A DNA stretch of 58,252 nucleotides, the filler included, from Sluysia triapertura (Eukaryota): assembly GCA_046118255.1 (NCBI GenBank). It is 4 parts of 4 records of this genome, joined end to end, with 100 filler letters (N's around TTAATTAATTAA, not from the genome) between each part and the next. Parts side by side here need not be neighbours in the genome. Positions count along the whole stretch, not along the records: positions 1 to 19,470 come from JBJNIA010065407.1; 3 more parts are not named here. One strand, 5' to 3'. The translations under genes and the position numbers were made by a program. The notes below the pieces were generated by a model. That model had not been told where the DNA came from. It saw only the letters and a list, made by a program, of their open reading frames with translations, and searched no databases. Of this stretch, positions 1-19,470 are shown piece after piece (the stretch's first letter is position 1; every line of letters starts with the position of its first letter).

Positions 1-1384
1 TAATATCATAAATTAATTAAAGAGTCCCAAGTAATTAGACATAGTCATATAAGACCTAAGTCATAAATAAAGAGTTCATCTAAAGTTAATTAAGTTAAGT
101 TATAATAGTACGTCTTCAATAGTGGTTTAAATCGTATATATTAAGCGGACCGACTCCTTAGATATTTTGTAAGTAAGATTAAATTTTAAAAGAAACTCTT
201 GCAATATACAAAATGGATGGTTGCACAATTAAGCTAGTTATAACAGACCCTCTACTTAATTATTGAATCAGTGTTGTTTAAGAGTTAAGAAGAAATTGAT
301 TTGTAATTGTTTAGTTGTTTAAAATTCTTTTAGTTACACCTCGGTAAGGCGTATACTACAAGCGGATCCATTAGAAAACGAAAAAAAATTTTACTGTTAA
401 GTTTATTTTAAAAAGAAAAACGAAATAAAATAAAATCATCTGATTATTGAATTTAATCATGCAAAGTATGTTTTATAACTTGCACTATTTAGTTCATTTC
501 AATTTATTGTCTTATATTTTTGTTAAAATATGTTTTCGTTTATTAGTTGCTAATTTTGTTTTTTAAGGGTCACAAGCTAAAATCATGTCAAATATGTCAC
601 CGTAGTTTCTTATTGACATGTAGATTCACAAAACGAATTAATTCATAAAATTTGAGGATATTATAAATAAAAGATCTAATTATCACTAAAACATACTTAA
701 AATGTAAGAATCCACACAAGCTTTTCTCAATAGGTTTAAGCTTATGAATTGACTAAGGTTATTATTAATATTAATTTCACAATTTTTTTTCATTTAATTT
801 ACTTTTATATTGCTAAAATCTTTTATTTATATTACATTATACAGAATTTAATTTATTGTTTTATATGAAATTTAATTAAAACATTTTACTATTTTACTTA
901 AAATAGTTATATTACTAACAACCTGCTTTAACAGCCTTATAAATGTAAATGTTACGCAAGAATTTACTTAAGATGTAGATTTACAAGTATATATATTGTA
1001 AAACTTATTAATTAAATTTTATATCTTACAGAAATAAAGATTGAAACTTATTTTATTTCATTATTGATTACAATTCAGAATCGACATTTATTTAATGACT
1101 GTTTACCATACGCATGTTGAGTTTATAATAAAATCAATAAGTGCACCATTTTGCACTACACCAGAATTAAAATTTCTAATTTACATCTAAAATTCAAGCA
1201 CACTTTTAAAAATAATAGTTTGTTCATGATATCTCTTGAATGACAATAGATTTTACGCACACATTGATGTAGAAAGCGATGAACAATTAAACAATGTGTG
1301 CTCTTAAATATATATTTTATTGTTTCATCGCTGCATAAATCATTATATTTAATTAAGTTTACATTTAAAGATCTTAACGATTCC

Positions 1385-4300
1385 ATGGCACTAAGTTTGG
1401 ATTCTCAAACAGCAAATCTAGCTCTGTATAAAGTAAAAGAAATACGATGTATATTGATTTCATATAGGAAAAGCTTAACAATTTGGAATATGGTGTTTCA
1501 TATGAAATTCTTGAACATGAAGAACATAAACAAGAGAATATAATTAAAGAAATCAATGAATTTTTAAGTTTAAAAACAGTATGATTCAGAAATATTTAAA
1601 ATAATTGTATTTAGAATGGAGAACAACTAAAGCACTTATCAGAAATAAATGTAATGTTATACTTACGTTTAATGTAATTTAGAATGACAGTAAAGCTAAT
1701 AAAGATACACTTAAATATCTAAAAAATATTTCAAGCCTAGAAAAACAATATTCCGTAATATCTTAAAAATTGTTAATAATTTTATAGATTTTGGCCAGCA
1801 AAATTGGAGCTTGTTCAATGCACCAAAGTAATCCAAATAATTTTTCGGAAATTATGTACGCAAATAAAGTAAAAATAATATATTTAATTTATTGATTTTA
1901 TGTAGCCAATAACTAATCAAGTAAAACAATGTTGGAATTATGTTAATAGAATATCACATTTATTACAAGTGCATTTAAAAAATGCTACAAACTATCATAT
2001 AGTAACTAATTGTAATATATTTATTAATTATAACTAGTTTCATCATGAAGTTAATGAAGTATCAGCATTGATAGATAAAAGATGGAAATTAATAACGCAA
2101 CAAGTGTCAAATTTTGAATCGGATGGAAGCAAAAGAGAATCTAACACCTTAATGTCAAATTTAAAAGATCATTTGTCATATTTTATTTATTTATGGAATC
2201 GAATAGACAATTTAGTGTCAGACTCTAAAAGGTTAGTGCCAATAAATCTCAGACAGGATCCAGTTTGTAATAAGAATATCATTGCTCAAAGTTTATTAGA
2301 ATATAAAAGTAAAAAAAATTTCATTAATTTCACATATAATAGATTCATCAATATCAATTGAAAATAATGAAGAAATACATATTTTGAATAATTCTGATCC
2401 AAATATGTGGAAAGTTAAAAATTCTAAAGGTGAAGTTGGACTTGTGCCATCTGTGTGTGTTTGGATACCTGGTCCTGATATAATATCAATTGAAAAAATC
2501 AGCAAGTTTGTATTTTGATTTAGAGTATAATGAGTATTAATATACTTAAATCATTGTCTTCCGATGACGCCACATCCAATTTATATTTTTAAAGTTCTAT
2601 CTTAATAATATTTTATTTTATGTATTTGAATTTTTAAAGATAGAATGAAATATCTTATTTTTTATTTTAAATTTTAAAATTTATGTAAATTTAAAACACA
2701 ATTTATAAGTTGTAAATTACAGTTTTAAGATTAATTTTTATTTATTTATTTTTTTAATTAATTTTATTTAATTTATTTTTTAATATTAATTTTATATTTA
2801 AACAAATTTTTAATAATTTTAATAAATCATATCTGTTAATTCACTCCAAATTAATACTTCAGTAATATTGACACCGAAATGCAAAATTTGTTAAAATACA
2901 TTTCCAAATACTTCAATTTCCAAAAGAATTTATGTAGATAAGAGTCCGTTATGTTCTGTTAATCTTCATTTTGTTGTCTACGAGGAACTTTGATTTTTTG
3001 ATTCTAGGCTTATTTGATTCTGTAACTTATTGTTAGTTCAATATAATTTTTCAGAAAATGTGTATTCTAATAATTAACCGAATAATCCTAATCTCAGGTA
3101 AAATAAAACTTCGGTTTGTATCCTTTAATGTGAAAGCGTTCAATGTTTCATGACATGTGCCAGAAAATTTCAAGTGGTTTTGACAGTTTGCATCCATTGT
3201 AAAATTATGTAAACAAGGTGAAGTTTTTTTGTACCTTCCAAATAATTTCAAAAATCTTATTAATATATTTTTTATTTGTATTGGTAATTTTAATAAATTA
3301 AATTTTATTTTCAAACTTAATTAGATTTAGTGAGTTGCAACATTTTCCCACCGTGTGATCGTGAAATTTTGATTGAAAAATTTTTTTGGGGTAATTAATA
3401 TTTACGATATATTGGCATATTTAAGAAAAACTAACACAAAGTGTATTTGTAAACCGAATTTCCGTAGTCATAGCATAATTCTTAATTTTGTAATAATTTA
3501 TTAACATTTAGCTTAAGAAATGCTTTACGAAAAAATTGGGAAATGGCTTTAAAACGTTACGAAATACTATTGGCAGATCATTATTATAATTTATTCATAA
3601 AATTACTAGAACAGGTTAGAATTCTTAAACACATACTGATTTAAATTAGGATTTTTATACCGATAACCAAAAGTTTTTTTTAAAAATGTTGAACAACATC
3701 GAAGAACTATTAATCATTCATTCAAATAATAAGAAGTGTGATAAATTAAAAGATTTAGTTGATGATATTAAAACGAAAATCGAAAGTAAGTAATATTTCT
3801 TGTTTATAATTTGTTAGATAATTTATATTCAAGCAATGCGCATCTTGTTGGTCAAGCAGAAATAGAAAACATGGTTTTACCAATATTAAGATTTCAGGTA
3901 TTAAGATTTTAACTACTTTGTATTTGTAATTAGGATAACGTTTTTAATCTGAGGCAATTGCGAGAATCGACCAATTTTAGTAAAGAACTCGAAGAATGTA
4001 AGGAAGAATTAAGAGTAAAAGAAAAAAGACTTTTAAACAGTTTAAGTACACTACAGTACGGTTTTATATTATTTTGATTAAAATTTTAGACAAATTCATA
4101 ATGAAAGTCGGAATGAACTTAAGAAGATAATTGAAAGTGTTAATATTACAAATTGCACTGAAATGTATAATCGACACTTAGAGAATGCAATTGTTACTGA
4201 AAATAATTCTGATACAGGTCCATATCATTCTAGATCACCAAATGATTTCGAATATAAAAATCAGCGAAGTAGCCAGATTCAACATGAACGTACAACTTAC

Positions 4301-7300
4301 AGCAAGGGAACTTCGATTCAAGAAGATATGTTTTCAATTGTCTCAGAAACTACATCTTACAATACAAATAGTCAAAAATCAAAAAATTTGAAATCTTTAA
4401 AGAAACGCAAACGAATATCACTTGATGTTCAAACTCAAATAGGAATAATTATGCGTGATAGTACTACTCAATATGATGATGATTCATTAAGTAACAATTA
4501 TAAGAAGCGTAAAAGAAAGAGAGCTTTGGTTGACTGTATGACCCAAATTGGTTATTTTACTAAAACAACAGGTTCACAGACTCCCTCACACTTGCTTGAA
4601 TCAAAAACAAAAATGAAAATGGATAGTATGACGCAAATTCACGTTTTACACAGAGACAATTGTTCGCAAACTCACAAGCATAAGCGTTTAAAATGTGACT
4701 GTCAAACACAAATAGGGCGTTTCTATTCAACAACCGGATCACAAACTGCACTACCAAAAAGTAATTTTATGGTACAAGCAGCAAGTGAAAGATATGATGT
4801 TATGACGCAAATAACTGTATTGAAATCTGAAAATGGTAATCAAACTGAAAAGACATTAATAACCGAAGAAAATAACTTACCCAATAAGTCTGTCATTATA
4901 ATTTCAGTCAAAGACAATACACCTATTGAAATTATTCAGAAAGATATTCAAGATAATTATTCTAACTTAAAAATAAACCAACCATTTACTGTAATAGACA
5001 GTAGTAGAGATGAATCTGGTAATTTGTTATATAATATCAATGAAAATGCAAAAATTAGTCATATAGGAGATGTTGATATATTATTACTTAAACCAGAGAA
5101 GAAAAAAACAAAAAAGATTCAAACAGGATACTCACAAAATTCAGAAAAATGGGATAGTATGTGTCAAATACAATATTTACATAATGATTGTTATACACAA
5201 ACCGAAACAGATAAAGTAGACTATTTTCAAAATAAAATAAATAATACTGCAGACATGGATAGTCAACATAATAGGTTGGATCAAGAACTTCAAAATGATG
5301 ATAATATTAGGACAACAAAAAGTAAAATAATACAAGTTGGTTTATCAAAAATTGATTGCAATTATGAAGTTGCGTGTCAAATCGGCAAAATAATTGCTGA
5401 ATCACAATCACAAACAGATGATATTGGAACAGATTTAACGAACAATGGTAAATCAAATCACTTAAAAAGGATAAAAAAGATTCAAACAGGTTATTCAACG
5501 ATAAATAATTTTTCGGATGTTGAGTGTCAATCAGGAGAAATAAGAGTAAATAGCAATATACAGACAGAGACAGCTGAAAGAATAATGAATGAAAAAGAAG
5601 AAAAGATGACTCAAGTAGGAATAAATGGTAAAATGGAATCAGATGTTTCTTGCCAAATATATACGATAACAAAAGATAACGAAAGTCAGACAGAAGGACG
5701 TGAATTAAAGCAAAAACTAAAAGAAACAAGGGATCCTCAATCAGATTCATGTATTATAGAAAGACAAAAAGGAAAGAAAGTTCAAGTAGGATATCCGAGA
5801 TTAAGTGAATCGTTAGATGTGGCTTGTCAATCTGGCCATTTAGTGGAAAGTAGTAGTTGTCAGACCGAAATAAACGATGAAGAAATGGTTGCAATTTATA
5901 GTAAACAGGATGAGAAGGCATTATCATTATGTGATTTGATTGATGAAGAAATTCAATATGGTAATGAATTACTAAGTGAGGCTATNNNNNNNNNNNNNNN
6001 NNNNNNNNNNNNNNNNNNNNNNNNNNNNNNNNNNNNNNNNNNNNNNNNNNNNNNNNNNNNNNNNNNNNNNNNNNNNNNNNNNNNNAATATCGTGTAAAGG
6101 GAAGAAAGTTCAAGTAGGATATCCGAGATTATTTGAATCACTAGATGTTGCTTGTCAATCAGGCCATTTAGTGGAAAGCAGTAGTTGTCAGACCGAAATA
6201 AACGATGAAGAAATGGTTGCAATTTATAGTAAACGTGATGAGAAGGCATTATCATTATGTGATTTGATTGATGAAGAAATTCAATATGGTAATGAATTAC
6301 TAAGTGAGGCTATGTTTGGAAGAGAAAGAAAAGGAAAGAAATTACAAGTTGGATCACCGAGAATTGATTATGATTATGACGTATCATGTCAAGCTGGTCA
6401 CGTGATATTAGAAAGTAGTTGTCAGACTGATGGCGATCTTGAAGATGGAGATGAAACTATGAGTGCAGTAAAAGCAATGAAGGAAGAAAGTCGTGGAGGT
6501 ATTGGAAGTTGTAAAGAATATTGCGAAAAAGAAATTCAGTCAGATGCAGTACCGATTGAAATATCGTGTAAAGGGAAGAAAGTTCAAGTAGGATATCCGA
6601 GATTATTTGAATCACTAGATGTTGCTTGTCAATCAGACCATTTAGTGGAAAGTAGTAGCTGTCAGACCGAAATAAACGATGAAGAATTGGTTGTATTACA
6701 TAGCAAACTTGATGAAAATATATTGCCGTTTTGTACTTTAGTTGATGAAAACATCCAGTTTTCTACTTACATTTTACATCATGATGCGTTACTTGATGTT
6801 AGCCCTATTCTTTGTGATAGATTTATTGATGTTTCTTCTATTTCATCTGAGTTTGCAGCTGTTAGTAAAAAGTTTCAAGTTGGGAATGGTTCAATTTATT
6901 TGAATTCTGTTGGTTTTAACACCGATTTACTTTCTTATGTTAATGTTGGACTGGACCATCAGTACTCTGAAGGCATGTCTTCACAGAAAAATGAAATGTA
7001 TTCAGTTTCATTACAAATATCCCCAAAATATTGTTTTGATAAGGAAACTCACTTATTTTTGAGCTATTTTAATGAACAAGTTGATACATTATTTCCACAT
7101 ATAATGGTTGATGAATCTTTGGATACCATTGATTCTGATTCGTACATTCCACCTGTATTCAATAAGCAATATACATCATATGAGAAGCAATTACAACAGA
7201 AAACTAATATAGAAATTAGTGAAGATTTTAGTTTAGCACCGAAATTGATAAAATTATGTGAAAACACACAAAGTGTCGCAGAAAGAATAACAAAGAAACA

Positions 7301-10300
7301 TATGCTTGATTTTAGTATTGATCATGATTCAAATACATATATAAGTCTTTCACCTAAATTTGTAAGTGGAAATAAACCGGAAGAATTTTCAGTCAATGCG
7401 AATGTAACAAATCTGAAAAGTGAATCGATCTTATATAATAGATTAAGTGATCCAATTGTTGTTAGTATTGAACATAATTTAAATGAAGTTGATGAAGAAT
7501 GTATACCATATCAGAAACATTCACAACAGGAAAGCAAACCATTAGAAGACAACGATTATAGTTTGGTACCGAAATTGATAAAATTAACTGAAGAAGTTGA
7601 TCCACGATCTTCGGCAATAAAACACTCGCAACAAAATTATCAAATTGTGAAAGATTTGGAAATCGAATCTGAAAAGAAGAAATTATGTGAAGTTAGTATT
7701 GGCCATAGTGTTTTACTTGAAGAAACCTCTATAGAATGTAATACCAACGTTTTGAATATGGATTATATCAATATGACTCCAAAATTTATTATTAGTACAA
7801 AAAGACCGATTATGCATGACATTATTACAGAGTCCAGAGATTCTCAAAAGCATAATATATTGACTTGTAGAAACCTTTTTAAAATTGAAGACGAAGAAGT
7901 TCTTTATAAGCCATCAGAAGAGAAAGTATGTAAGAAACATAACGATATGTGTTCTACTGTTAGTTTAGTACCAAAAGTTATTTCTAAACCAAAGTTTTAT
8001 AATATTCTCACACCATCGATTAATTCAAAATCAGCTAATATCTTGTGTGAATCAATATTGTCGAATACTACACATATTTCAAATAAATTTAGTCCGCCTC
8101 TGATGAAAGAAGAAATTATTTCTTACGATTATAAATCACAAAATCAACAGCAATATATCGAACATGATTATTATACAAATATAAATGATCACATTCAGGA
8201 TATTAGTCTTTCTCCTAAATTTGTAAATGTAACAAATCTGAAAAGTGAATCGATCTTATATAATAGATTAAGTGATCCAATTGTTGTTAGTATTGAACAT
8301 AATTTAAATGAAGTTGATGAAGAATGTATACCATATCAGAGACATTCACAGCAGGAAAGTAAACCATTAGAAGATAAAGATTGCAGTTTGGAACCAAAAT
8401 TGATAAAATTAACTGAAAGTAACGAAGTTGATCCACGATCTTCAGCAATAAAACACTCGCAACAAAATTATCAAATTGTGAAAGATATGGAAATCAAATT
8501 TGAAAAGAAGAAATTATGTGAAGTTAGTATTGAACACGATTCAACTGAACACATAGATTATATTAGTCTCTCGCCTAAATTTGTAGATAGAAGTAAACCA
8601 GAAGAATTTTCAGTCAATGTGAATGTAACAAATATGAAAAATGATTCGATTATGTATGGTGGATTAAGTGATCGACTTGTAGTTGATATTGAATACGATT
8701 TGAATGAAATTAGTAAAGAATACATGTCAGACCAGAAACAACTACAACAAAAAACGAAAAATTCAACAGATGAGGATTGTAATTTAGAACCGAAATTAAT
8801 TAAATTACGTGAAATCGACATTTCTGATGGTATAAATTCAAAATTGGTTTGCACAGCTAAAGAAAGTGACTTTCTCTTGAATCAGAAAAAAGTTATGAAA
8901 ACTGAAGTTGTGATGTATGATAGAACACAAATTTATAAAGAAGCATCTATAGAGCATGGATTTGATTCAGAATTAGTTGATAAACATCAAGAAAATATAT
9001 ATGATTTAGAATATAACAAATCAAATGAAATGTCGAACAGTATTCATCTGAAACCTAAATTATTGTCATATCAAAACTATGTAGATAAATCAACATCTAC
9101 ACCAGAAATTTGTGGAAAATTTGAAAAAGGTTCTCAAGCAATTAATCGACCAAATTTCGATGAAATAACACAAACGGTGTTATCAGACATTAAAAATACA
9201 TCTCAATTTTTGAGTAAACCGAAACATTTCGAAACATCTATTGATGTTGATTTCGGCAATGAATATATAATTGAATCCACTAAATCTAAATCAGTTATTA
9301 CCACTAAAAAAGAAATTCTTCCTTCACTTTCTATTTCGGATTTTGTTTCGGATAAGGAAGAATATTTATCTAATTCAGGTAATACATTGACTTCAGTATT
9401 AAAGAACACTAAAACTCAAAGTTGGGATGTAAATAGAAAATTACCTACGAAAAGTTGTCAAACACATCATAAATTTTGCACAAGTGACTCTGATTTAATT
9501 GAGATGTATGACGTTTTGAAAAAATCGAAATATTTAAAGAATGCTGCAAGTGAAACAACTGAATGTGATAATGTATATGAGTATTTATATGAACAAAAGG
9601 GAGCTAAGTATTTATTACATCAATATCAAAAGTTTGTTAAAACTGTTGATTTTAATGTCCAAACTAATATGTATAATACTATTTCGACAAAGACACAATC
9701 AACTTCATTTTCAGAAGGAAATGTTGTACAAACAATTAACAGTAATGTTGATGATGACGACAGAAATTCTTCACGAGCAGATATATCTGAAAATGTGCAT
9801 ACAAAACGACCGCATAAAAATAAGCGAATCCAACGAGGTTGTAGTGTATTTCAAAGAAAAAATGCTGAAACAAATACAACTGAGTCATATGGTGATCATA
9901 TCGAAGTAACATACACGGAGACAATTTTAGAAGAATCTGTAGTTACGAAGCGACCTGTATCAAAAGTGTCTACAACTGTTGATGAAACAGGTAATGAATC
10001 AAAATCTAGCACCTTAACCAGAATATCAACTAAATCGACACCTATACCTGTTTTTAGTCAGTCTGATAAGTCTATTCAAACAGAAAAAGAAAACAACCAA
10101 ACTTTTCTTCAAGAAATAAACTACGATAACATTTTAACTCTTGTAAGAAATTATAATGTTAAGGGTGTAAAAGATTTTAGAAATAACAATTTTATTATTC
10201 CATTATTAGATGCTATCGATAACAAATTGATTGATTTAAATTCTGATAAATTTTATATATCTTCTTCAAAGTCCATATCAATATTTGATGCTATTAGTAA

Positions 10301-10322
10301 AGGATTTATTGAAGCTTCGTGA
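1385..10322 (+). CDS. Plakin-family cytolinker-like protein, 13 exons: plakin domain + SH3, long QT-motif and repeat region, C-terminal plectin-repeat-like segment
   Basis: Manually spliced GT-AG exons 1385-1432, 1468-1578, 1615-1650, 1683-1754, 1788-1868, 1906-2001, 2038-2308, 2343-2505, 3512-3614, 3650-3785, 3818-3897, 3934-4055, 4090-10322 keep one open frame, apart from the 100-N gap. Translation includes QCWNYVNRISHLLQVHLKNATNYHIFHHEV (cf. plakin QWSWxLQLxxCIExHLKENxAYFQFF) and the plakin SH3 LLEYKNSSISIENNEEIHILNNSDPNMWKVKNSKGEVGLVPSVCVWIPGPD. The C-terminus IIPLLDAIDNKLID...SISIFDAISKGFI resembles plectin repeats. The start codon is tentative because an AG acceptor at 1369-1370 could add upstream exons. 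Confidence 0.85.
5770..6690 (+). repeat. Coding tandem repeat, 474-bp (158-aa) unit, collapsed across a 100-N gap
   Basis: GKKVQVGYPRLxESLDVACQSxHLVESSSCQTEINDEE occurs at ~5770, ~6099 and ~6573 with near-identical DNA; position 6086 corresponds to 6560 (period 474). Confidence 0.9.
7401..8532 (+). repeat. Intra-exon ~300-bp duplication (7401-7701 and 8226-8532), with a more diverged partial copy at ~8560-8810
   Basis: NVTNLKSESILYNRLSDPIVVSIEHNLNEVDEECIPYQ...KKKLCEVSI is repeated almost identically in DNA and protein. Confidence 0.9.
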
Positions 10323-10481
10323 TTATATTTTATTTAGTTTTTCATTTACTTTTTAACATATCATAACTTTATATGTTTTTATTAGAGATTGTTTTAATGT
10401 GTGGTTATGAACCAGAAATTTAAAAATTTTTTGAAAAATTATGTTATGACTATTTTACGATCTACATAGTATGAATTAAAT

Positions 10482-10658
10482 ATGAGCTTATATAATTTAA
10501 CATTGCAAAAGAGCACTGGAATAATTAAAGCTGTGCATGGACATTTTTCGGGCACCAAACAACAAGAAATAGCAGTAGCAAAAGTGAAAACAATAGAATT
10601 ATTACGAACTGATCAAAGTTCTGGAAAAGTTCAAACATTAATCTCAACAGAAGTTTTT
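10482..10658 (+). pseudogene. SF3B3: SF3B3 (SAP130/Rse1) N-terminal fragment, first ~59 aa only, fused to unrelated sequence
   Basis: MSLYNLTLQKSTGIIKAVHGHFSGTKQQEIAVAKVKTIELLRTDQSSGKVQTLISTEVF matches the SF3B3 N-terminus (MFLYNLTLQRATGISFAIHGNFSGTKQQEIVVSRGKILELLRPDPNTGKVHTLLTVEVFG). Similarity stops abruptly after EVF and there is no usable intron. Confidence 0.85.
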
Positions 10659-11860
10659 GAATTTAGTTGTTTAGAGAGTGATAGAATGATAGAAATGTAT
10701 CGATATCTATTAACTTTGCAAGAAAAATTTGATACATTTAAGTGCACTTTATCAAACCTTGAATGTTTTATGAATTTTGACATGGCTATTAGAGTTGGTA
10801 AAGCATTCCAAGCTATTATTTCAGACTTACGTACAAATAAATACGATTTAAATGTTAAAAATGATTCTAGTGAAATGCTACTTCGTAAACCATATAAATG
10901 TAAAGACAGTGATGCAAAACTTTACTTAAGAAAATATGCTAATAATGTGACTATCAAATAATGATAGCGCATGATGATAAAGATGCTTTATATTTACTGT
11001 TAAGTAACAAGTTTAATGTTGAAGAGTTTTTGGTGTATATGTCTGAAGTTAGTTTTAATATAAGTGATTATTATGTATCGATCGAATTAATTGATAATGA
11101 TTTAAAAGAAAAGTATTCTGAATCTTGCAATTCAAAAAGATTCAGAAGAATGTTGAAGTCACTATCCAGAAGTGGTGGATGTGCTTCAAATGTTGATTTT
11201 AGAATTAACGTATCCAATAAAATTGAACAGCTTTGTTTGATGAGAGATTGTAATAACGATTATACAATCCAATTCATTCCGACGAGAATGATTACATTGT
11301 TACCAAGTTTAAAAAATTTTGAAATTGAATATTTTAAGTCTGCACAATCCCAAAATATTAAAGATAAGAGTGAAGATGAAGTTGAAGAGAATAGGGAGAA
11401 AGAATTACGTCTCTCTCTTGTTGTGTTATCTAGTGTGAGTGATGAGTTCAAAATTATGTCATCTAGTTTTGGCTGTATTCTTCGAATATGGTCGTTTAAA
11501 AGTGTTAATAAAAATGCTATTTGTTTTAAGTATTCTTCTTCACCATTAAACTCTATTATTTTATTTGATTTATCGTGCTTTACCAAGAGTAGTAAAACTT
11601 CCCGCATTATTGTCTGTGGGAGTGCTCATAGAACAATTCGAATTTGGAATGGAGATTCTGGATCGTGTTTAGCTATAATGTTCGGCCATGATAACAGATC
11701 CTCTATTAACGAAGATACGCGTAAACGAGCTGAATTGTTAGAACCCTACGTTACTAATGGCATGATTGAGCACGCAGCTGGTACGTCATTGCTGGAACCG
11801 AACTACCATAGAGACGCATTCCAAAGGAGAAAAAATGTTATGAAATCTCGTGGCTTTCTA
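10659..11860 (+). pseudogene. Intronless mosaic coding sequence with two WD40-like repeats; likely chimeric or pseudogenic
   Basis: ORFs 10482-10961 and 10961-12316 overlap at TAATG. IMSSSFGCILRIWSF and IVCGSAHRTIRIWNGDSGSCLAIMFGHDN are WD40-like. Beyond ~11860 the ORF runs through AT-rich sequence that does not look coding. Confidence 0.5.
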
Positions 11861-12189
11861 ACTTTTATATTTGATCAATATCTTATAACTTTTTTATCAC
11901 TTCTATATGATCGTATAGTCGATAACTTTTCACGTAAGAATGTTTATTTAGTTAGAAATTTGTATCATAGTAAACTAATTGTGGATACATTTAAAAATAG
12001 TGTTAATAAAATTTCAATGTGTTCTTATATTGATTTTTGTTTTCAAATTTTTAATTTAAAATATATCAAGTGCCTTAAGCACCTATATTATAATATTAAA
12101 CCACTATATGTTAAGGAAAAATTATGTCATTATAGTTTAACAAATTTAGCTAAATTTCAAATGTTAAAACCTAAGAGTAATCAAAAAAA

Positions 12190-15100
12190 GAAAACCACTC
12201 CGCCCATATCATCATTATCTTTATTTTTTTCTAGGTCTATCTCGTCTTCTCTTAAAAGTATTTGTTTCTTTATTTTCGGTTTCTATAAGTTGGTTTTGTT
12301 TAAGTCTACTATATAATCAAGTTTTTCTTCAGTTTAATCATCATTATCATTGGTAATGTCTATAAATTTATTTTCATTATAATTATTTTCCATTAATTCT
12401 CTTAATGATGAACGTGGGGTTCTATCTAAATCAACATCCTTGTCATCATTTATTAGTTCATCTGATTTTCTTAAATGATCTGCAGTTATGCCATTATAAC
12501 TGCGGAAGTCATTGATGCTTCCTTATGGTTTTCATTCATCGATGGATAACCATAATCATTTATATAATCATTAGGTGCTAATTTTCTGTCATAAAAATAT
12601 AAATCGACATAAGTTACAGTAGGGCCATTTGACTTAAGTAATTCTATAATTTCTTTTGAAATTGAAGTTACTAGAAGTTCCATGTTAATATTCAGGGCAT
12701 TATTAATAATTATACTTATTTTCATTAATTCTTTAGGATTATTTTTTTCTTTCTTTTTGACCTATTTCCCTTAGTAATTTTCTTGCTTTAAACTTATATA
12801 AACTATCTTCCATACTTAGAATAACTAATATTAATTTAATATCATATCCATTTTGTATACTTAATTCTAAATTTAATAAGTCATTTAAATTTTCATTTAA
12901 ATCTTTACCTTTGTCATATTTGATAAAAATTTCCTCAACTTTTGATCTGTTTCTTTAATTTTAGTTTCTGGGGTATCTATTTTTTATTAGCTGATATTAT
13001 TATTATTGATTTTATCTCCTCTGTTTCCATTTCTTCTGTGGCACCGTAATACGCATCTTCTTCATCTATCTCCATTTCTTCTGCTTTCAATTCTTCACCA
13101 TCAGTTTCTTTATTAATAATATTATTTTCTATATCTGTTTCTACTTCTTGGTCATCACTTAATTCATTATTTGATTGTTTTTCTTCTTGATTTGTTTCTT
13201 CCTCTGTTGAACTTGATTCTGTATTTGATACTTCTATTTCATCATTACTTTCTTTTGATTCAGAATCTATTTCTTTTCTTCCCAATTATTTGTTGAATTC
13301 TTTTTCTTTTATCTTCATTTGAAATTACTTTTTTTGTCTTTTTATTTATTCAATACTTTCTTCCAAAAGTTGATCTAATAATTCTCGAATTCTAACCTGA
13401 ATTGGTTGAATTGTTAATCTATTTTCTTCTTTTTCTCGTTGTTACCTTCTCTGTTTGTCTTTTTGAAATTCAAAATATCTATCGTGCATATAACTCATAA
13501 AGATTTCTTCTTGTTTATTCTTAAATCTATTTTTATCACAATATAATTCAGTGATATAGAATTCTCGTAGCATTGCATTCTTTGCCTCATCGGTAATTAA
13601 CCTAAGATATTTATCATCTTCTTCGTCGCTACTCATTTCTCTTCTTCTTGGTTGTCTTCTACTCCTATTTCTTTCTTCTCGATACTGATATTCATCTTTA
13701 TCTTCGTATTCGTTTCTGTTATTTCCACAATCATTTTGACTTCTATAATTACAATTTACCTGTCCCTTATTACTCTTATTATTATCATTATCATTAGACC
13801 TTACTTTCCTATTAGGGCTTTGGTATCTTTGTTGATATTGGCCCCTTATCTTAGCAAAATATTGAGTAAATACATTTTGCGTAATGTCCTTTTTTATTAC
13901 AGTTGTCACAAATTATTTCTCCCTCTATATTAGTTTGAGTCTTATTATTATTTTCATATCTTATTTGTCTTTGTTCATATTTAGAGCGCCATAATTACTT
14001 ATTTGGAATCCTCTATTTCTATTCGTATTACCCCTATAATTGCTTGAATTACTTCTGTAATTATTTGAGTTACTTCTATAATTGTTTGAATTACCTCTAA
14101 AATAATTATTTGAAATTGAATTATCATTGTTTCTACGTGGGCTATTGGAGTTACTATCATTATATCTTTCATAAGTCGGAGAATTAAATTTATTATCATC
14201 ATAATTATTTATATTTCTTCTTAATTTAGGACTTTTATCTCCTTTGACTTCATTGTCACTTATATAATCAATATTATTCTTATTCTTTTTATAGTTATAT
14301 GAACGTCCTATACTTCTTAGTTTCTTAATTACTTCTTTAAATGATTTTCCTTATATTAAGGTAACATAAGTTATTAATTCTGACCGTAATCCAGTTTTTA
14401 GTTTACCTGTTAATGTCATTTCTTTTTTATATTTTTTATCTTTTTAAATCTAGCGACAAGGCTTTTAAGCATACTCATATACAGATTCATTTGGTTTTTG
14501 TATCCTAGAGTTTAACATTTTAGTAATGCGAGAAAAGTTCGATAGAATAACTTAAAAGCTTAAAGTGAGTTCACCAACGTACTGGACTGACCAGCTAGGG
14601 TCAGCCTTTGGATTTTGTAGATAAGAATAAAAGGAATTCCCTCGAAATGATACGCTGATTAAAATGAAGCTTCTTTATTTGGTCCTACTTTTTGAAAATT
14701 TTTAGTAAATCTGGAGGTTTTTAATCAAGAATAATTTAATTAATATTTTGCGTAGATCCTATGAAAAGGATCGTTGATAAATATTTTACGTAGTTAGAAT
14801 TAAAATCTAACTATGGCAAGCTTTTGCAGTATTGATTTTATATTTGAAACTATTTAATAAAGACCACTAAACGTTACCGAAAATTTTTATTAAAAAATGA
14901 GTAAAAGGATTTGTTACAAAATATAAATAAAAATGGTAATATAGTAATATAGTTTACAATGGAATTACTAAAAGTAATTCTAATCTCAATAATATTTTAA
15001 CAAAAGATTTTTCGTAGATGTAATAAAAGATCTAAAATGAATATTAGATAGTTTAAGTAGATTTTACGTGGATATCACTAGGATATCTGATCTTATTATA

Positions 15101-15900
15101 AATAAACTAACGGTTATTATATAAAAATTGAATGTAAATCTGGTTAAATGATTTTCGATATGTCGCAGTAGAACCACTATGAATTTGACGTCGATCAAAA
15201 ATTTATTGTCGCGATTTTAATAGTTTTTTCGTCAAAGATTATTGTCAAAAAGAAATGTCAAAATTTTATTGTGGTGAAATTAGAATTTATTAGTTATTTA
15301 TATAAGGTTTTTGTGACCTTGACCAGATTTAGTTTTATTAAAATAAATTTTAAATTTATAATTAGTTAATATTTAGTATTTGCAAAATTAAAATTTTTTA
15401 AAGAACAAAGTTAATATTTAAAATATTTAAAAATAATAAATAACAATAAAACGTACTTTTAAATAGAAATCCTCAAAAACATTTAAACATTAAAAATAAT
15501 TGAATATTGTTATATCAGTATAAAACATTAAAATAATTGAATAAAAATAATCTATAATTTAGTTCAAAGTAATATACGTATAATAAGTCACACAATACAA
15601 ATAATATAACACACATGATAATATAACAGTATAATATTTTCTCATGTCATCAAGTGCTATTTCTTCAGTAAAGACGTTAACAAATTCATTCCAAGTCTGT
15701 TTATTATTATTACTTATTTCCTTATGAGTCTGGATTGCAACTCCAAGTAAATAATTTTGGATTCGTTTTATTTTTTCGGCTTCATTCAAGCCTTTTGCTT
15801 CATCTATGCTTTCCTATTCGAATAAGAAGTCGCAGAGATCTTCCTCTGATTCGTCAAATTTTTTCATTTCAGGTCATGCCATTATTGGGTGCATTTCTCT
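12190..15900 (-). mobile_element. Decayed gag-like LTR-retrotransposon remnant with additional broken low-complexity ORFs
   Basis: Minus-strand EAEKIKRIQNYLLGVA...TWNEFVNVFTEE and LNSRIQKPNESVYEY...KLKTGLRSEL are retrotransposon-gag-like. They are followed by N/R-rich and acidic ORF fragments with stops and frameshifts. Boundaries are approximate. Confidence 0.6.
14527..15628. mobile_element. 1102-bp TG...CA insertion (probable solo LTR) nested in the gag remnant
   Basis: Begins TG (14527) and ends CA (15628), flanked by GTAA (14523-14526) and GTAT (15629-15632). Removing it restores in-frame MRKYYTKMLNSRIQKPNESVYEY on the minus strand. Confidence 0.7.
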
Positions 15901-17237
15901 GGCTAATTGTGGCATATATTCCTTAAAATTATTAGGTAGAGCCATATAATTTCTTAATTTTGATATGTAATCGTCGTATAATACAATTTGTTTATTTATT
16001 TTTCTTAAAACTTACTTAATCTATTAATAATCAACTTAGAGAATAATAATTTTGCTCAAATTTAACTTATTCTTAATGAAATCGTAACACAATTATTTTA
16101 AAGTTTATTCTTAAATGCTCAAATCTTTATATTTATTCTTATATTGTTTTAATAGTGATCTTTATATTTATACATAAATCTTTATATTTTTATATTGTTT
16201 AAATAGTGGTTTATTTTCAGAAAATCATTTATTTTTACGAATAATATTATTACTCCAAATAATTGTTAAAAATATAAATATGTTAAAAATATAATGTACA
16301 TTGTTACTTAGTANNNNNNNNNNNNNNNNNNNNNNNNNNNNNNNNNNNNNNNNNNNNNNNNNNNNNNNNNNNNNNNNNNNNNNNNNNNNNNNNNNNNNNN
16401 NNNNNNNNNNNNNNNNNNNNNNNNNNNNNNNNNNNNNNNNNNNNNTCAATACGCCACATAAAAAAACGGCAAAATTCTTCCTGTTTCAGAATTTTAGTGA
16501 ATGATTTATTTTAACTGCTTTTGAGTACTTACTGTGCAGTAGATGTGAGTGCAATATAAATTAAAATATTATATTATATTATTACTATTATTATTATAAT
16601 CATTTGTTTATTCGTTTATTTCACACGAAAATTCAATTTTTCCCTAAATTTGATAAAATACAAGCCATAGCCAGCAAAAATAAATGTTCTTAGTGGAAGC
16701 ATTAACATGCAAAGTAGTAAATTTAAAATTAATTTCACTTACATGAATGTTACTTTTATAATTAATTTATAATTAAAATATTTAAGTGAATAATTAATTG
16801 AATAATAAAATAATTAATTAAAATAAAAATTTACTTTAACTTGTCATAACAATCCTGCTGTTGTGAGTCACCCAACTGATAATGTTTGTTAAAAGTTCGT
16901 TTAATTATAAAGCATAAATACTCTTACTTTATAAAGTTGTACAAACTTATTTTAATGCATCATTTTTATGTATACGTAGAGATATATTGAGACACAATTT
17001 TAAAAATATATTGCGCGTAAATTGTTTAGGCTACGATTTCGTATATTTAATTCTTTTATATTTCATTATAATAATCAGTAATACAGATTCAAGAACTTTC
17101 AACTTTTTTTATAAATATTGTTATGTTTTAAAAATTATTTTTTTTAATCCTTTAATTATATATTAAAAGAAATAATTATTTCTAAAATCATTTTTTTCAT
17201 TCAAGATTCATCGTTTAAACCTCTATAAATTTAAATA

Positions 17238-18233
17238 ATGGTTAAAGAAGCTATACAAATTTATTTACGTATTAAGCCTACTTTTCCTAAATCTTTAAAA
17301 TCAGTAAAAATATTTTTAATATTAATTTGTTTGCAGGAATATGAGATAATCAGTATCAATGATGAAAATAAATGCGATAAAATTACAATTAAAGTACCTC
17401 CTGATTTTGAATCTTCAAATAGGAAAGATAATTTTATTTTTCAATTTCAAAAAGTGTTTGATCAGGATGCGAAACAAGATGATGTTTTTAATAATATTGC
17501 AGTGCCAGTAATTGATAAGTAATATTTATGCATTTTACAAAAAATATAGCTTTTTAAAAGGATATAATGGAACTATATTTGCATATGGACAAACAGGTAG
17601 CGGTAAAACATTTACCATCACAGGAGGAGCTGAACGATATTCAGATCGTGGTATTATTCCTCGAACTATTTCGTACATATTTAACTATGCTAACAAAGTA
17701 AGTTGTTTCTATTTGAAATATTTCTAAAATAAAACTAGAATAAAAATCGAAATTGTTCTGTTAATATATCGTACTTGGAAATATACAATGAAAATGGTTA
17801 TGATCTTTTGGATACAAAACATGATACAGCACAAAAGCTGGAAGATCTCAAGTATCATTGTTTTTGTTTTGATTTGAATTATTAAAGCAAGGTAATTTTG
17901 TATGAGGATCTAGAATCAAACGTTACTTTAAAAAATTTGTCTATTCATCAAGTGATATCAGAAGAAGAAGCTTTAAATATGCTGTTTATTGGCGACACTA
18001 ATAGAATAGTTGCAGAAGTAAATAAAATTATTCAAATAATTAATGTGATTATTAAATTTAATATAGAAATATTCATAAAGTTTTCTAACAAAATTTTTTA
18101 TTGTTTATTGACAGACTCCAATGAATCAAGCTTCGACAAGATCTCATTGCATTTTCACACTCCATATTACCACCAAAGATACGGATTCACCAATCATAAC
18201 AAAATCAAAACTTCATTTAGTTGATCTAGCTGG
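17238..18233 (+). CDS. KIF6: Kinesin-9 family KIF6, 5' partial (motor domain up to LVDLAG)
   Basis: Exons 17238-17303, 17337-17518, 17550-17697, 17739-17851, 17888-18017, 18115-18233 give [14 protein letters not shown]...[35 protein letters not shown]...[15 protein letters not shown]...[23 protein letters not shown]...KLHLVDLAG, all KIF6-typical. The model ends just before the gap at 18278. Confidence 0.95.
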
Positions 18234-19470
18234 GTTATTATTAATTAATTTGAATTTTAGATATAAATAAATTGTAANNNNNNNNNNNNNNNNNNNNNNN
18301 NNNNNNNNNNNNNNNNNNNNNNNNNNNNNNNNNNNNNNNNNNNNNNNNNNNNNNNNNNNNNNNNNNNNNNNNNNNNNNNNNNNNNNNNNNNNNNNNNNNN
18401 NNNNNATCTTATTTGATTAACAATCTTATTTGATTGAATGTTAACATTTTTACAATTTTAGTTTATTTGTATGACTTTGAAATTAATAATTCTTGTGAAT
18501 ATTATTTTTATTTGTTAATGATTTAAATATTATTTCTATTATAGAAAAATAACATAATATTACTAAAATTAAACAAACGTTTAAATGATTAAAATAAAAT
18601 AATTGATTCTAATTTTATTATAAAAGAAGAAAAATTTAATAAAAAATATTTAAAATCAAAAATTCTGTATTTAAACGAATCATTTTTTCTTAAAGCTATG
18701 TGCGCTATCTGCCTGACCTAATACTTTGTTTATTAAACATATCTAAATTCATTTTTAAAAGTTTATTTAAATTTTTATCCGTATTTTTTCCGTCTACGAA
18801 ATCTGAAAGAAATGTTTCTACTTCTTTGGATAGACCACTAAATGTTGTTTTTATGAGCTATTTTCTTCATTTGTTATATTTGTTGAATCTGAGAGTATGT
18901 CACCTATTTCTTCTTCTTGTTATTGTAAATTTAGTTTTTTTATGAAATTAAAATTATCATTATTTCTGTTCTTATTTGATTCGTTATTTACATAAGAACA
19001 AAAGTTCTTATAAATCTGGTGCTTAAGGCACTCGAAAATTCCGTTATGAAACAAACTCTGAAATAACAACAACACGAAAATTTTTTATTATAGATAAATC
19101 GGACAAACCTTATAAAAATTGGTGACACATACAAAAAAACACAACCGTAATCATATACAACTTACGTTCATTACGGGCAGTGGATTTATCGAGTATGAAG
19201 CCATTGTATGTACTTATCTCAAAACTAATGGAGTCGTACTATTCGGTTTTCTTAATTCAATTATAACTTAACCAACTTTTTACTTATGACTTATGTCTTA
19301 TGTTGGTTGTGTCTTTTATCACTTTTATTTTCCCAAATTATTAGAGTAGAACTCAATAACTAAATAAACTCAAAATCTCGATATATTTGTTAAATTATCA
19401 CAAAACTACAACCAGAAGATATAAATTATGACAATACCAGTTATTCTTTATAACAATAACAATACAAATT

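Follow-up and report, generated by a model that had tools for sequence, protein, structure and literature searches.

A glutamine-anchored motif array in a flatworm plakin-domain gene, a candidate docking site for LC8-family dynein light chains

A three-site motif module behind a plakin domain

A window of 58,252 nucleotides, filler included, was analysed from the genome assembly of Sluysia triapertura (GCA_046118255.1; 619 Mb in 263,945 contigs). Positions 1-19470 of the window are the entire contig JBJNIA010065407.1, which carries a flatworm plakin-domain gene. The gene closes with a giant exon, apparently 3'-terminal, whose first third is a stretch of short Gln-anchored motifs. Its module has 34 residues and comprises three 8-residue segments centred on Gln: K-[GS]-K-K-[LVI]-Q-V-G, [LFY]-[DE]-[VAS]-x-C-Q-[TSI]-G and x-[DE]-S-x-[CVIT]-Q-T-[ED]. 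The modules alternate with short acidic helices, and a two-segment form located upstream (D-x-x-T-Q-I ... x-Q-T) is an older version. The array resembles ligands of the dynein light chain LC8 position by position. The motifs with their periodicity and conservation, the missing predicted fold and the gene context were observed; LC8 binding, dimerisation, stiffening and a choice among paralogues are inferred. The array would most likely act as a multivalent docking site for dimers of the LC8 dynein-light-chain family, with every segment adding a β-strand to one groove of an LC8 dimer. Two plakin chains would thereby run parallel and in register, turning the disordered stretch into a beads-on-a-string rod of the kind formed by ASCIZ, Nup159 and KANK1. 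That LC8-family dimers bind the array and zip two chains into a rod is, in our judgement, close to an even prospect, falling a little short of it.

From the pairs to the last complete triplet, the motifs span codons 4424-6668, in frame 2 before an assembly gap and in frame 0 after it. Five pairs come first, at about 4424-4850 (DVQTQI/TTQY, DCMTQI/GSQT, DSMTQI/CSQT, DCQTQI/GSQT and DVMTQI/GNQT). They have the form D-x-x-T-Q-I-(G) ... x-x-Q-T/Y with a basic patch ahead of every pair, and match triplet segments 2 and 3 except that position -1 is Thr and not Cys. The triplets follow the form KK[IVL]Q[TV]G-x8-[DE]xxCQ[ISA]x-x7-xxQT[ED]. Eight are complete, five at about 5111-5870 and three at about 6102-6668, and a degenerate ninth begins near 6867. 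The initial annotation of this stretch had listed these pairs and at least eight triplets, and all of them were found in place. It had taken the triplet as the repeat unit; the triplets are real, but the true unit is larger, a super-unit of 158 amino acids (474 nt in tandem) made of one a- and one b-half-unit. Each half-unit combines a triplet with a predicted helix, in which a fourth Gln is invariant. Tandem Repeats Finder missed the coding repeats, which are too diverged or too long in period.

Motif counts were made on the motif-bearing part of 831 amino acids and compared with 2000 shuffles. Loose anchors of the type [TVICS]Q[TVIS] occurred 34 times, against 5.8 ± 2.3 in shuffled sequence, and none of the 2000 shuffles reached this number; the array therefore stands clear of the shuffled control proposed with the initial annotation. 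The pattern Q[TVIS][GED] was present 28 times (3.6 in shuffled sequence). The distance from one Gln to the next was mainly 11 (13 times) or 15 residues (7 times). Further motifs had been claimed near the C-terminus. The strings exist, but they are non-periodic, and their number (10, against 5.7 ± 2.2) barely exceeds chance, being reached by 97 of the 2000 shuffles.

Conservation in a single homologue

A HMMER/phmmer search of 1.84 billion cluster representatives retrieved a sole relative, a protein of 3195 amino acids (P0001; UniParc UPI0006065D5D) with an E-value of 2e-254 and 36 matched stretches. A word-indexed search with the repeat region of P0001 returned only P0001 itself, no homologue was found for the C-terminal 1080 amino acids of the window protein, and a search of the own genome with the repeat led to this contig only. 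P0001 opens with five or six pairs that are the same as those of the window and collinear with them; D, T, Q and I/L are kept in each pair at an overall identity of 32 %. After the pairs, a- and b-half-units alternate, about 36 in all, with lengths of 79 and 84 amino acids.

The 29 triplet units of both proteins align with zero indels, and the module layout of 8+7+8+3+8 residues is constant in all of them. Invariant columns are K6, Q9, G11, C23, Q24 and Q35, to which the alignment of super-units adds Q66, the fourth Gln, within '..EEIQY'. The same residues stay invariant in old, diverged units (31-39 % identity). A few polar residues at fixed spacing, with the remainder free to vary, are the pattern of a constrained linear-motif array and not of a hydrophobic-core domain or a neutral repeat.

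Comparison with LC8 ligands

Published rules describe LC8 ligands as strands of 8 residues around a Gln at position 0 (PMC6607443). Mid-sized hydrogen-bonding or hydrophobic residues are buried at -1 and +1, position -4 takes a hydrogen-bonding residue (frequently Asp), -3 a positive one and +2 Pro, Asp or Glu. The segments of the array read as follows: K(-5) G/S(-4) K(-3) K(-2) V/L/I(-1) Q V(+1) G(+2) in segment 1, L/F/Y(-5) D/E(-4) V/A/S(-3) S/E/A(-2) C(-1) Q T/S/I(+1) G(+2) in segment 2 and x(-5) D/E(-4) S(-3) x(-2) C/V/I/T(-1) Q T(+1) E/D(+2) in segment 3, with fixed linkers of 7 and 3 residues between them. Conforming to the rules are the Gln at 0 and its small or beta-branched neighbours at -1 and +1, together with Asp/Glu at -4 in segment 2, Lys at -3 in segment 1 and Glu/Asp at +2 in segment 3. 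The anchors were compared by eye with 79 validated LC8 binders (Table S4, PMC6607443), which include VQV (ATMIN, DLGAP1), IQV (nNOS, DNMT3A), TQI (RSP3, ICE1), IQT, SQT (BSN, WWC1/3), VQT, VQC (gephyrin) and TQT (PMC6607443). Most anchors of the array have a precedent in this set.

The count of LC8 paralogues suggested with the initial annotation revealed a greatly expanded family in this genome: PF01221 was matched at least 62 times, often by single open frames without stops (e.g., L001-L008). The canonical orthologue (L001:1486-1755) is closest to proteins of the trematodes Fasciola and Schistosoma, and a paralogue (L002:1092-1358) is 67 % identical to it. Together with the AT-rich sequence and the introns of mostly 32-36 nt, this closeness to trematode proteins suggests a neodermatan-type flatworm. 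Tctex-1 (PF03645) gave 13 matches. In parasitic flatworms, an enlarged set of dynein light chains with a tegumental location has been described (PMC7936022, PMC4265353). A literature search yielded no paper connecting LC8 with plakins or spectraplakins.

A complex of two canonical LC8 chains (L001:1486-1755, 90 amino acids) and two triplet units (6087-6212) was modelled in three runs, as had been proposed for a triplet with LC8 dimers. The interaction prediction score from aligned errors (ipSAE) was 0.54, 0.76 and 0.52, against 0.07 for the best of three controls, so the predicted complex passes its controls, but weakly; the verdict of the tool was 'weak support'. At least 88 % of the contacts were common to the runs, and the partner had a predicted local distance difference test score (pLDDT) of at least 47. 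When the tool was calibrated, 51 of 78 solved complexes attained the mark, as did 2 of 108 mismatches. The prediction modestly raises the probability that LC8 binds.

Several observations weigh against LC8 as the partner. Scores up to 0.60 were reached in the calibration by 5 of the 78 solved complexes and by all 4 passing mismatches. The calibration set is also unlike a job with peptides and several copies, where the score is uncalibrated, and since many LC8-peptide structures have been solved, a pass may show likeness and not binding. The canonical TQT occurs once in the 831 amino acids, which is not above chance, and the ELM-style pattern [^P].[KR].TQT has no match in them. Gln anchors are enriched, but for the LC8-like QT motifs of the initial designation the near absence of TQT, the Cys at -1 and the Gly at +2 would be atypical. 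The list of validated binders lacks Cys and Leu at -1 as well as Ser and Ala at +1; binders prefer D/E/P at +2, where the Gly of segments 1 and 2 is seldom seen; and several IQT and SQT peptides were non-binders by isothermal titration calorimetry. Finally, independent LC8 motifs would need neither a spacing free of indels nor conserved residues in the linkers (P/S-R-L, H-L-V). This excess could reflect a different partner or a fold formed on binding.

Alternative explanations

The best surviving alternative takes up the last point. The module may be a lineage-specific binding or self-assembly unit for a partner other than LC8, for instance a cytoskeletal filament (the array then standing in for the plakin-repeat domain, which binds intermediate filaments) or another β-strand-capturing protein, and may fold on binding only, so that the likeness to LC8 ligands would be convergent or superficial. 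Such a partner would account for the fixed 15/11 Gln spacing without indels in 29 units and for the invariant or near-invariant K6, G11, C23, R14, L15 and G26, which go beyond an 8-residue LC8 motif. The position of the array would fit as well: in shot/VAB-10A-type genes a giant plakin-repeat exon, comparable to the giant exon here, directly follows the plakin domain, and the genome search, a lower bound, found no worm-type plectin repeat. However, the module has no similarity to any Pfam family, including tau-type tubulin-binding and plectin repeats, no candidate partner is known, and both the fit to the LC8 rules and the complex score separated from its controls would be left unexplained. 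We regard a non-LC8 partner as unlikely, yet deserving serious attention. A tau-like microtubule-binding repeat was specifically considered and rejected, as PF00418 had no match at E up to 1.

A second alternative sees in the half-units of about 80 amino acids small folded domains, strung together like Ig or spectrin repeats, which went unmodelled owing to the shallow alignment. AlphaFold2 gave for one super-unit of the window (alignment of 17 rows) a pLDDT of 54.9, a predicted template modelling score (pTM) of 0.13 and zero strands. For three consecutive super-units of P0001 the pLDDT was 42.2 and the pTM 0.22; the model shows the triplets as coil and places single helices, 13-46 residues long, in the intervals. 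The alignments were shallow, and folding upon binding is compatible with these results. Low pLDDT and pTM, lack of strands and isolated helices speak against a β-solenoid and against a continuous coiled coil. The motif region is probably disordered and without a fold of its own according to these models, as the initial annotation had expected. Q66 lies within a predicted helix, so the fourth Gln is probably not a strand site. Folded domains would agree with the regular alternation of 79 and 84 amino acids, with conserved hydrophobic positions and Cys/His, and with the pLDDT of 60-66 in the 30 residues that open the unit, a value above typical disorder. Against them stand the low pTM of both models, the lack of strands, the Thr in place of Cys and the missing His in older units, and the restriction of invariance to Gln, Lys and Gly, a pattern of linear motifs and not of a hydrophobic core. 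We consider a string of folded domains improbable. Zinc binding via the conserved Cys/His was rejected, for older units and pairs carry Thr/Ser/Lys at these places.

The array might also be a recent, essentially neutral tandem expansion, perhaps in a rarely or never expressed exon, its periodicity arising from duplication alone. Adjacent copies are indeed 75-92 % identical in DNA, a single homologue is known, and the assembly collapsed at the array into a gap (5986-6085, 100 N), which lies within the tandem super-repeat and hides at least one b-unit. The gap is flanked by copies of 92 % DNA identity, and this similarity explains the assembly break. At its left edge a complete a-unit (..LLSEA) is followed by AT, the opening of the Met codon of a b-unit; the right edge starts with the last base of a Glu codon, then ISCKG, the end of a b-unit. 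The frame before the gap (that of 4091) and the frame after it (that of 6087) are mismatched across the 100 N; a hidden b-unit of 246 nt, which together with three stray bases makes 83 codons, would restore the frame, and so would this length plus any multiple of 474 nt. Since both edges are in register with the super-repeat, the reading frame is most probably continuous across the gap and at least one further triplet hidden. A neutral repeat is hard to reconcile with an intact open frame of more than 2000 codons in an AT-rich genome (23-30 % G+C) where stops are frequent, with pairs that are one-to-one orthologous to those of a 32 %-identical protein and keep the motif residues, and with the same invariant residues in old units of 31-39 % identity. 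Neutral expansion is thus very improbable.

Least probable is that the invariant Gln and Lys are transglutaminase cross-linking sites of a covalently cross-linked scaffold, like involucrin, envoplakin and periplakin in vertebrate cornified envelopes: the invariant super-unit columns are exactly Lys and Gln, vertebrate plakins are transglutaminase substrates and involucrin is a Gln-periodic tandem repeat, but the flanks (beta-branched at ±1, acidic at -4 and +2) are unlike the known preferences for transglutaminase substrates, and the fixed 15/11 spacing would have no reason. An SQ/TQ cluster for the kinases ATM/ATR was rejected because it fits the pairs only; the -1 residues of the triplets are V/L/I/C.

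Plakin identity and gene model

The gene model was read off the DNA and the open frames of the plus strand, and the exons were searched individually, by reference. The plakin-type SH3 exon (2343-2505; ..MWKVKNSKGEVGLVPSVCVWIPGP..) matched Pfam SH3_10 (PF17902) with an E-value of 5.6e-13 and 49.2 bits on 2300-2515, compared with 25 bits for the generic SH3_1; it matched the plectin chain 3pe0_A with 24.8 bits in a PDB sequence search. A profile search of the contigs of the genome placed SH3_10 at 2318-2470, and the plakin SH3 signature WKV..G.(x)VPSVC..IPGP is readable in the translation. The initial annotation was right in calling this a bona fide plakin SH3 domain. In plectin, desmoplakin and shot/VAB-10/MACF1, SH3_10 lies within helical repeats, and here its neighbouring exons read as helical too. 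The preceding plakin-domain exon (2038-2308, phase 1 end; open frame and splice sites taken from the DNA) reads as the end of a spectrin-like repeat and the first SH3 strands. This exon and the exons of 3512-4055 have helical heptad-like sequence with zero Pfam or PDB matches, which holds for exon 2038-2308 also when taken by itself. ESM Atlas clusters for 2038-2358 were bacterial sulfatases and were judged spurious.

The exons are connected by predicted splice sites throughout. A GT-AG intron of 34 nt (2309-2342) precedes the SH3 exon. The donor GT at 2506 leaves 2 nucleotides that form one codon with base 3512, across an intron of about 1 kb (2506-3511) linking the SH3 exon to four small helical exons (3512-3614, 3650-3785, 3818-3897 and 3934-4055), which are in frame and separated by GT-AG introns of 35, 32 and 36 nt. 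By position and composition alone, these small exons appear spectrin-repeat-like. The last of them ends in phase 2 before a GT-AG intron of 34 nt (4056-4089); CA (4054-4055) and A (4090) make up a Gln codon, and from 4091 onwards the reading is that of the long open frame. Of the six introns in the plakin part (2309-4089), five have 32-36 nt and GT-AG borders, the sixth has about 1 kb; such bimodal intron lengths are familiar from parasitic flatworm genomes. All junctions preserve the frame, which is good indirect evidence that the plakin exons are joined in frame to the giant exon 4090-10322 by predicted splicing, in agreement with the initial annotation, which placed both in one gene. 

The giant exon begins, ahead of the gap, with a short helical lead-in, the five pairs, a spacer and five triplets, and ends there with an a-unit (4090-5985). 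After the gap (6086-6900) it continues with an a-unit, a b-unit and an a-unit, which hold the three complete triplets up to 6668, and with the degenerate ninth unit. The remainder (6901-10322) is orphan sequence with a second motif array, a C-terminal tail and a stop codon at 10320-10322. The second array (7230-9213, plus strand) is unrelated to the first and consists of 11 copies of (D/N)x(S/N)L(S/A/V/E)PK(L/F)(I/V), alternating as SLSPKFV / SLxPKLIKL; this SLxPK[LF][IV] array lies in DNA repeats of 255 and 116 nt with 76-94 % identity and has neither a homologue nor a Pfam match. An ATG-initiated exon with the N-terminus of an SF3B3/DDB1-type protein (10482-10660, plus strand; Pfam Beta-prop_RSE1_1st, E 8e-7) starts 160 nt past the stop codon of the plakin gene; further downstream it has no obvious continuation. 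With the stop at 10322 and the next gene start so close, the plakin gene appears to end at 10322 and the giant exon looks 3'-terminal.

In Pfam searches of the giant exon (three pieces) and of each small exon SH3_10 alone was significant, and matches to Yippee, DUF5374 and Yqai were sub-threshold noise. The region 4091-10319 had no Plectin, Spectrin, GAS2 or EF-hand match at E up to 1-5; the coiled-coil propensity of 6900-10322 was not computed. A plectin-repeat-like C-terminal tail at 10020-10319 was considered and dropped with zero Pfam matches. Unlike in known plakins, neither a coiled-coil rod, plectin repeats, a spectrin-repeat rod, an EF-hand nor a GAR domain was detected by Pfam in the at least 2070 following codons. 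From this single contig we infer that the motif array replaced the rod. GAS2 domains occur in the assembly on other contigs only, and the locus in the window is the only worm-type plakin locus found. Three further contigs of less than 600 nt each, C151385 with SH3_10 and C145928 and C143173 with plectin repeats, look vertebrate-like, show no DNA similarity to the window and may be host or other contamination.

Relation to known LC8 scaffolds

A close counterpart is the L2 linker of KANK1. It has at least 15 weak, non-canonical LC8 sites; the isolated peptides barely bind, and cooperativity builds the rod (bioRxiv 10.1101/2025.07.16.665182). Both KANK1 and, as predicted, the plakin are cytoskeleton-linked proteins with a long disordered region, many non-canonical sites and short linkers, and the KANK1 rod consists of stacked LC8 dimers on two parallel chains. 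The sites of KANK1 are irregular and not repeats, whereas the plakin array is an indel-free 34-residue module, tandemly amplified, alternating with helices and situated behind a plakin domain. LC8 binding was shown for KANK1; for the plakin array it is predicted from sequence and model. ASCIZ/ATMIN and Nup159 likewise have many Gln-anchored motifs in a disordered region with short linkers, and in-register duplex scaffolds are a feature of ASCIZ and Nup159. The linkers of ASCIZ have 3, 6 and 9 residues, and linkers in such ladders are as short as 1-9 residues (PMC10046861). The motifs of ASCIZ/ATMIN and Nup159 are mostly TQT at variable spacing; in the plakin array TQT is almost absent and Cys is the usual residue at -1 in segments 2 and 3. 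ASCIZ is a transcription factor and Nup159 a nucleoporin, neither a cytolinker. The dynein intermediate chain has two adjacent Gln strands at a conserved short distance with basic residues ahead, and each captures a different light-chain dimer (Tctex-1/LC8). This is one tandem site, compared with at least nine in the window and about 36 in P0001.

If LC8 binds, a hub protein would, for the first time in a plakin, provide dimerisation and the rod in trans, in place of a coiled coil or spectrin repeats. The array would also surpass all described LC8 ladders in regularity and in number of repeats (P0001 has about 100 candidate sites) and would be a natural model for the influence of motif spacing on rod stiffness. 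The expanded, tegument-associated dynein-light-chain family of parasitic flatworms, an expansion long unexplained, would have a structural client. A far-reaching version of the proposal is that a parasitic flatworm clade traded the rod and the plakin repeats for the amplified three-site module, each site class recruiting a different LC8/Tctex member, so that a heteromeric rod of tunable length would organise the cytoskeleton of the syncytial tegument; we think this decidedly doubtful, though somewhat less so than the folded domains discussed above. Should binding fail, a conserved, clade-restricted linear-motif module would still be present in the only worm-type plakin locus of the assembly.

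Other features of the contig

The contig is strongly AT-rich, with a G+C content of 18-31 % along its length. Beyond the SF3B3-like exon start, an open frame of 456 codons (10946-12313, plus strand) has weak WD40 similarity (..RIWSF.., ..RTIRIWNGDSG..GHD), all Pfam matches being below the cut-offs. Kinesin motor-domain exons (..SYLEIYNE.., ..SSRSH-like.., ..LVDLAG..) are located at 17235-18267 on the plus strand and are interrupted by an N gap near 18278-18408. The minus strand carries at 12337-14350 open frames whose protein sequence is very acidic, is rich in Arg and Asn and includes a CCHC-like knuckle (..CDNCNKKGHYAKC..); a coding tandem repeat of 21 nt lies at 13999-14114. Both GC and AT skew invert at 12337-14350.

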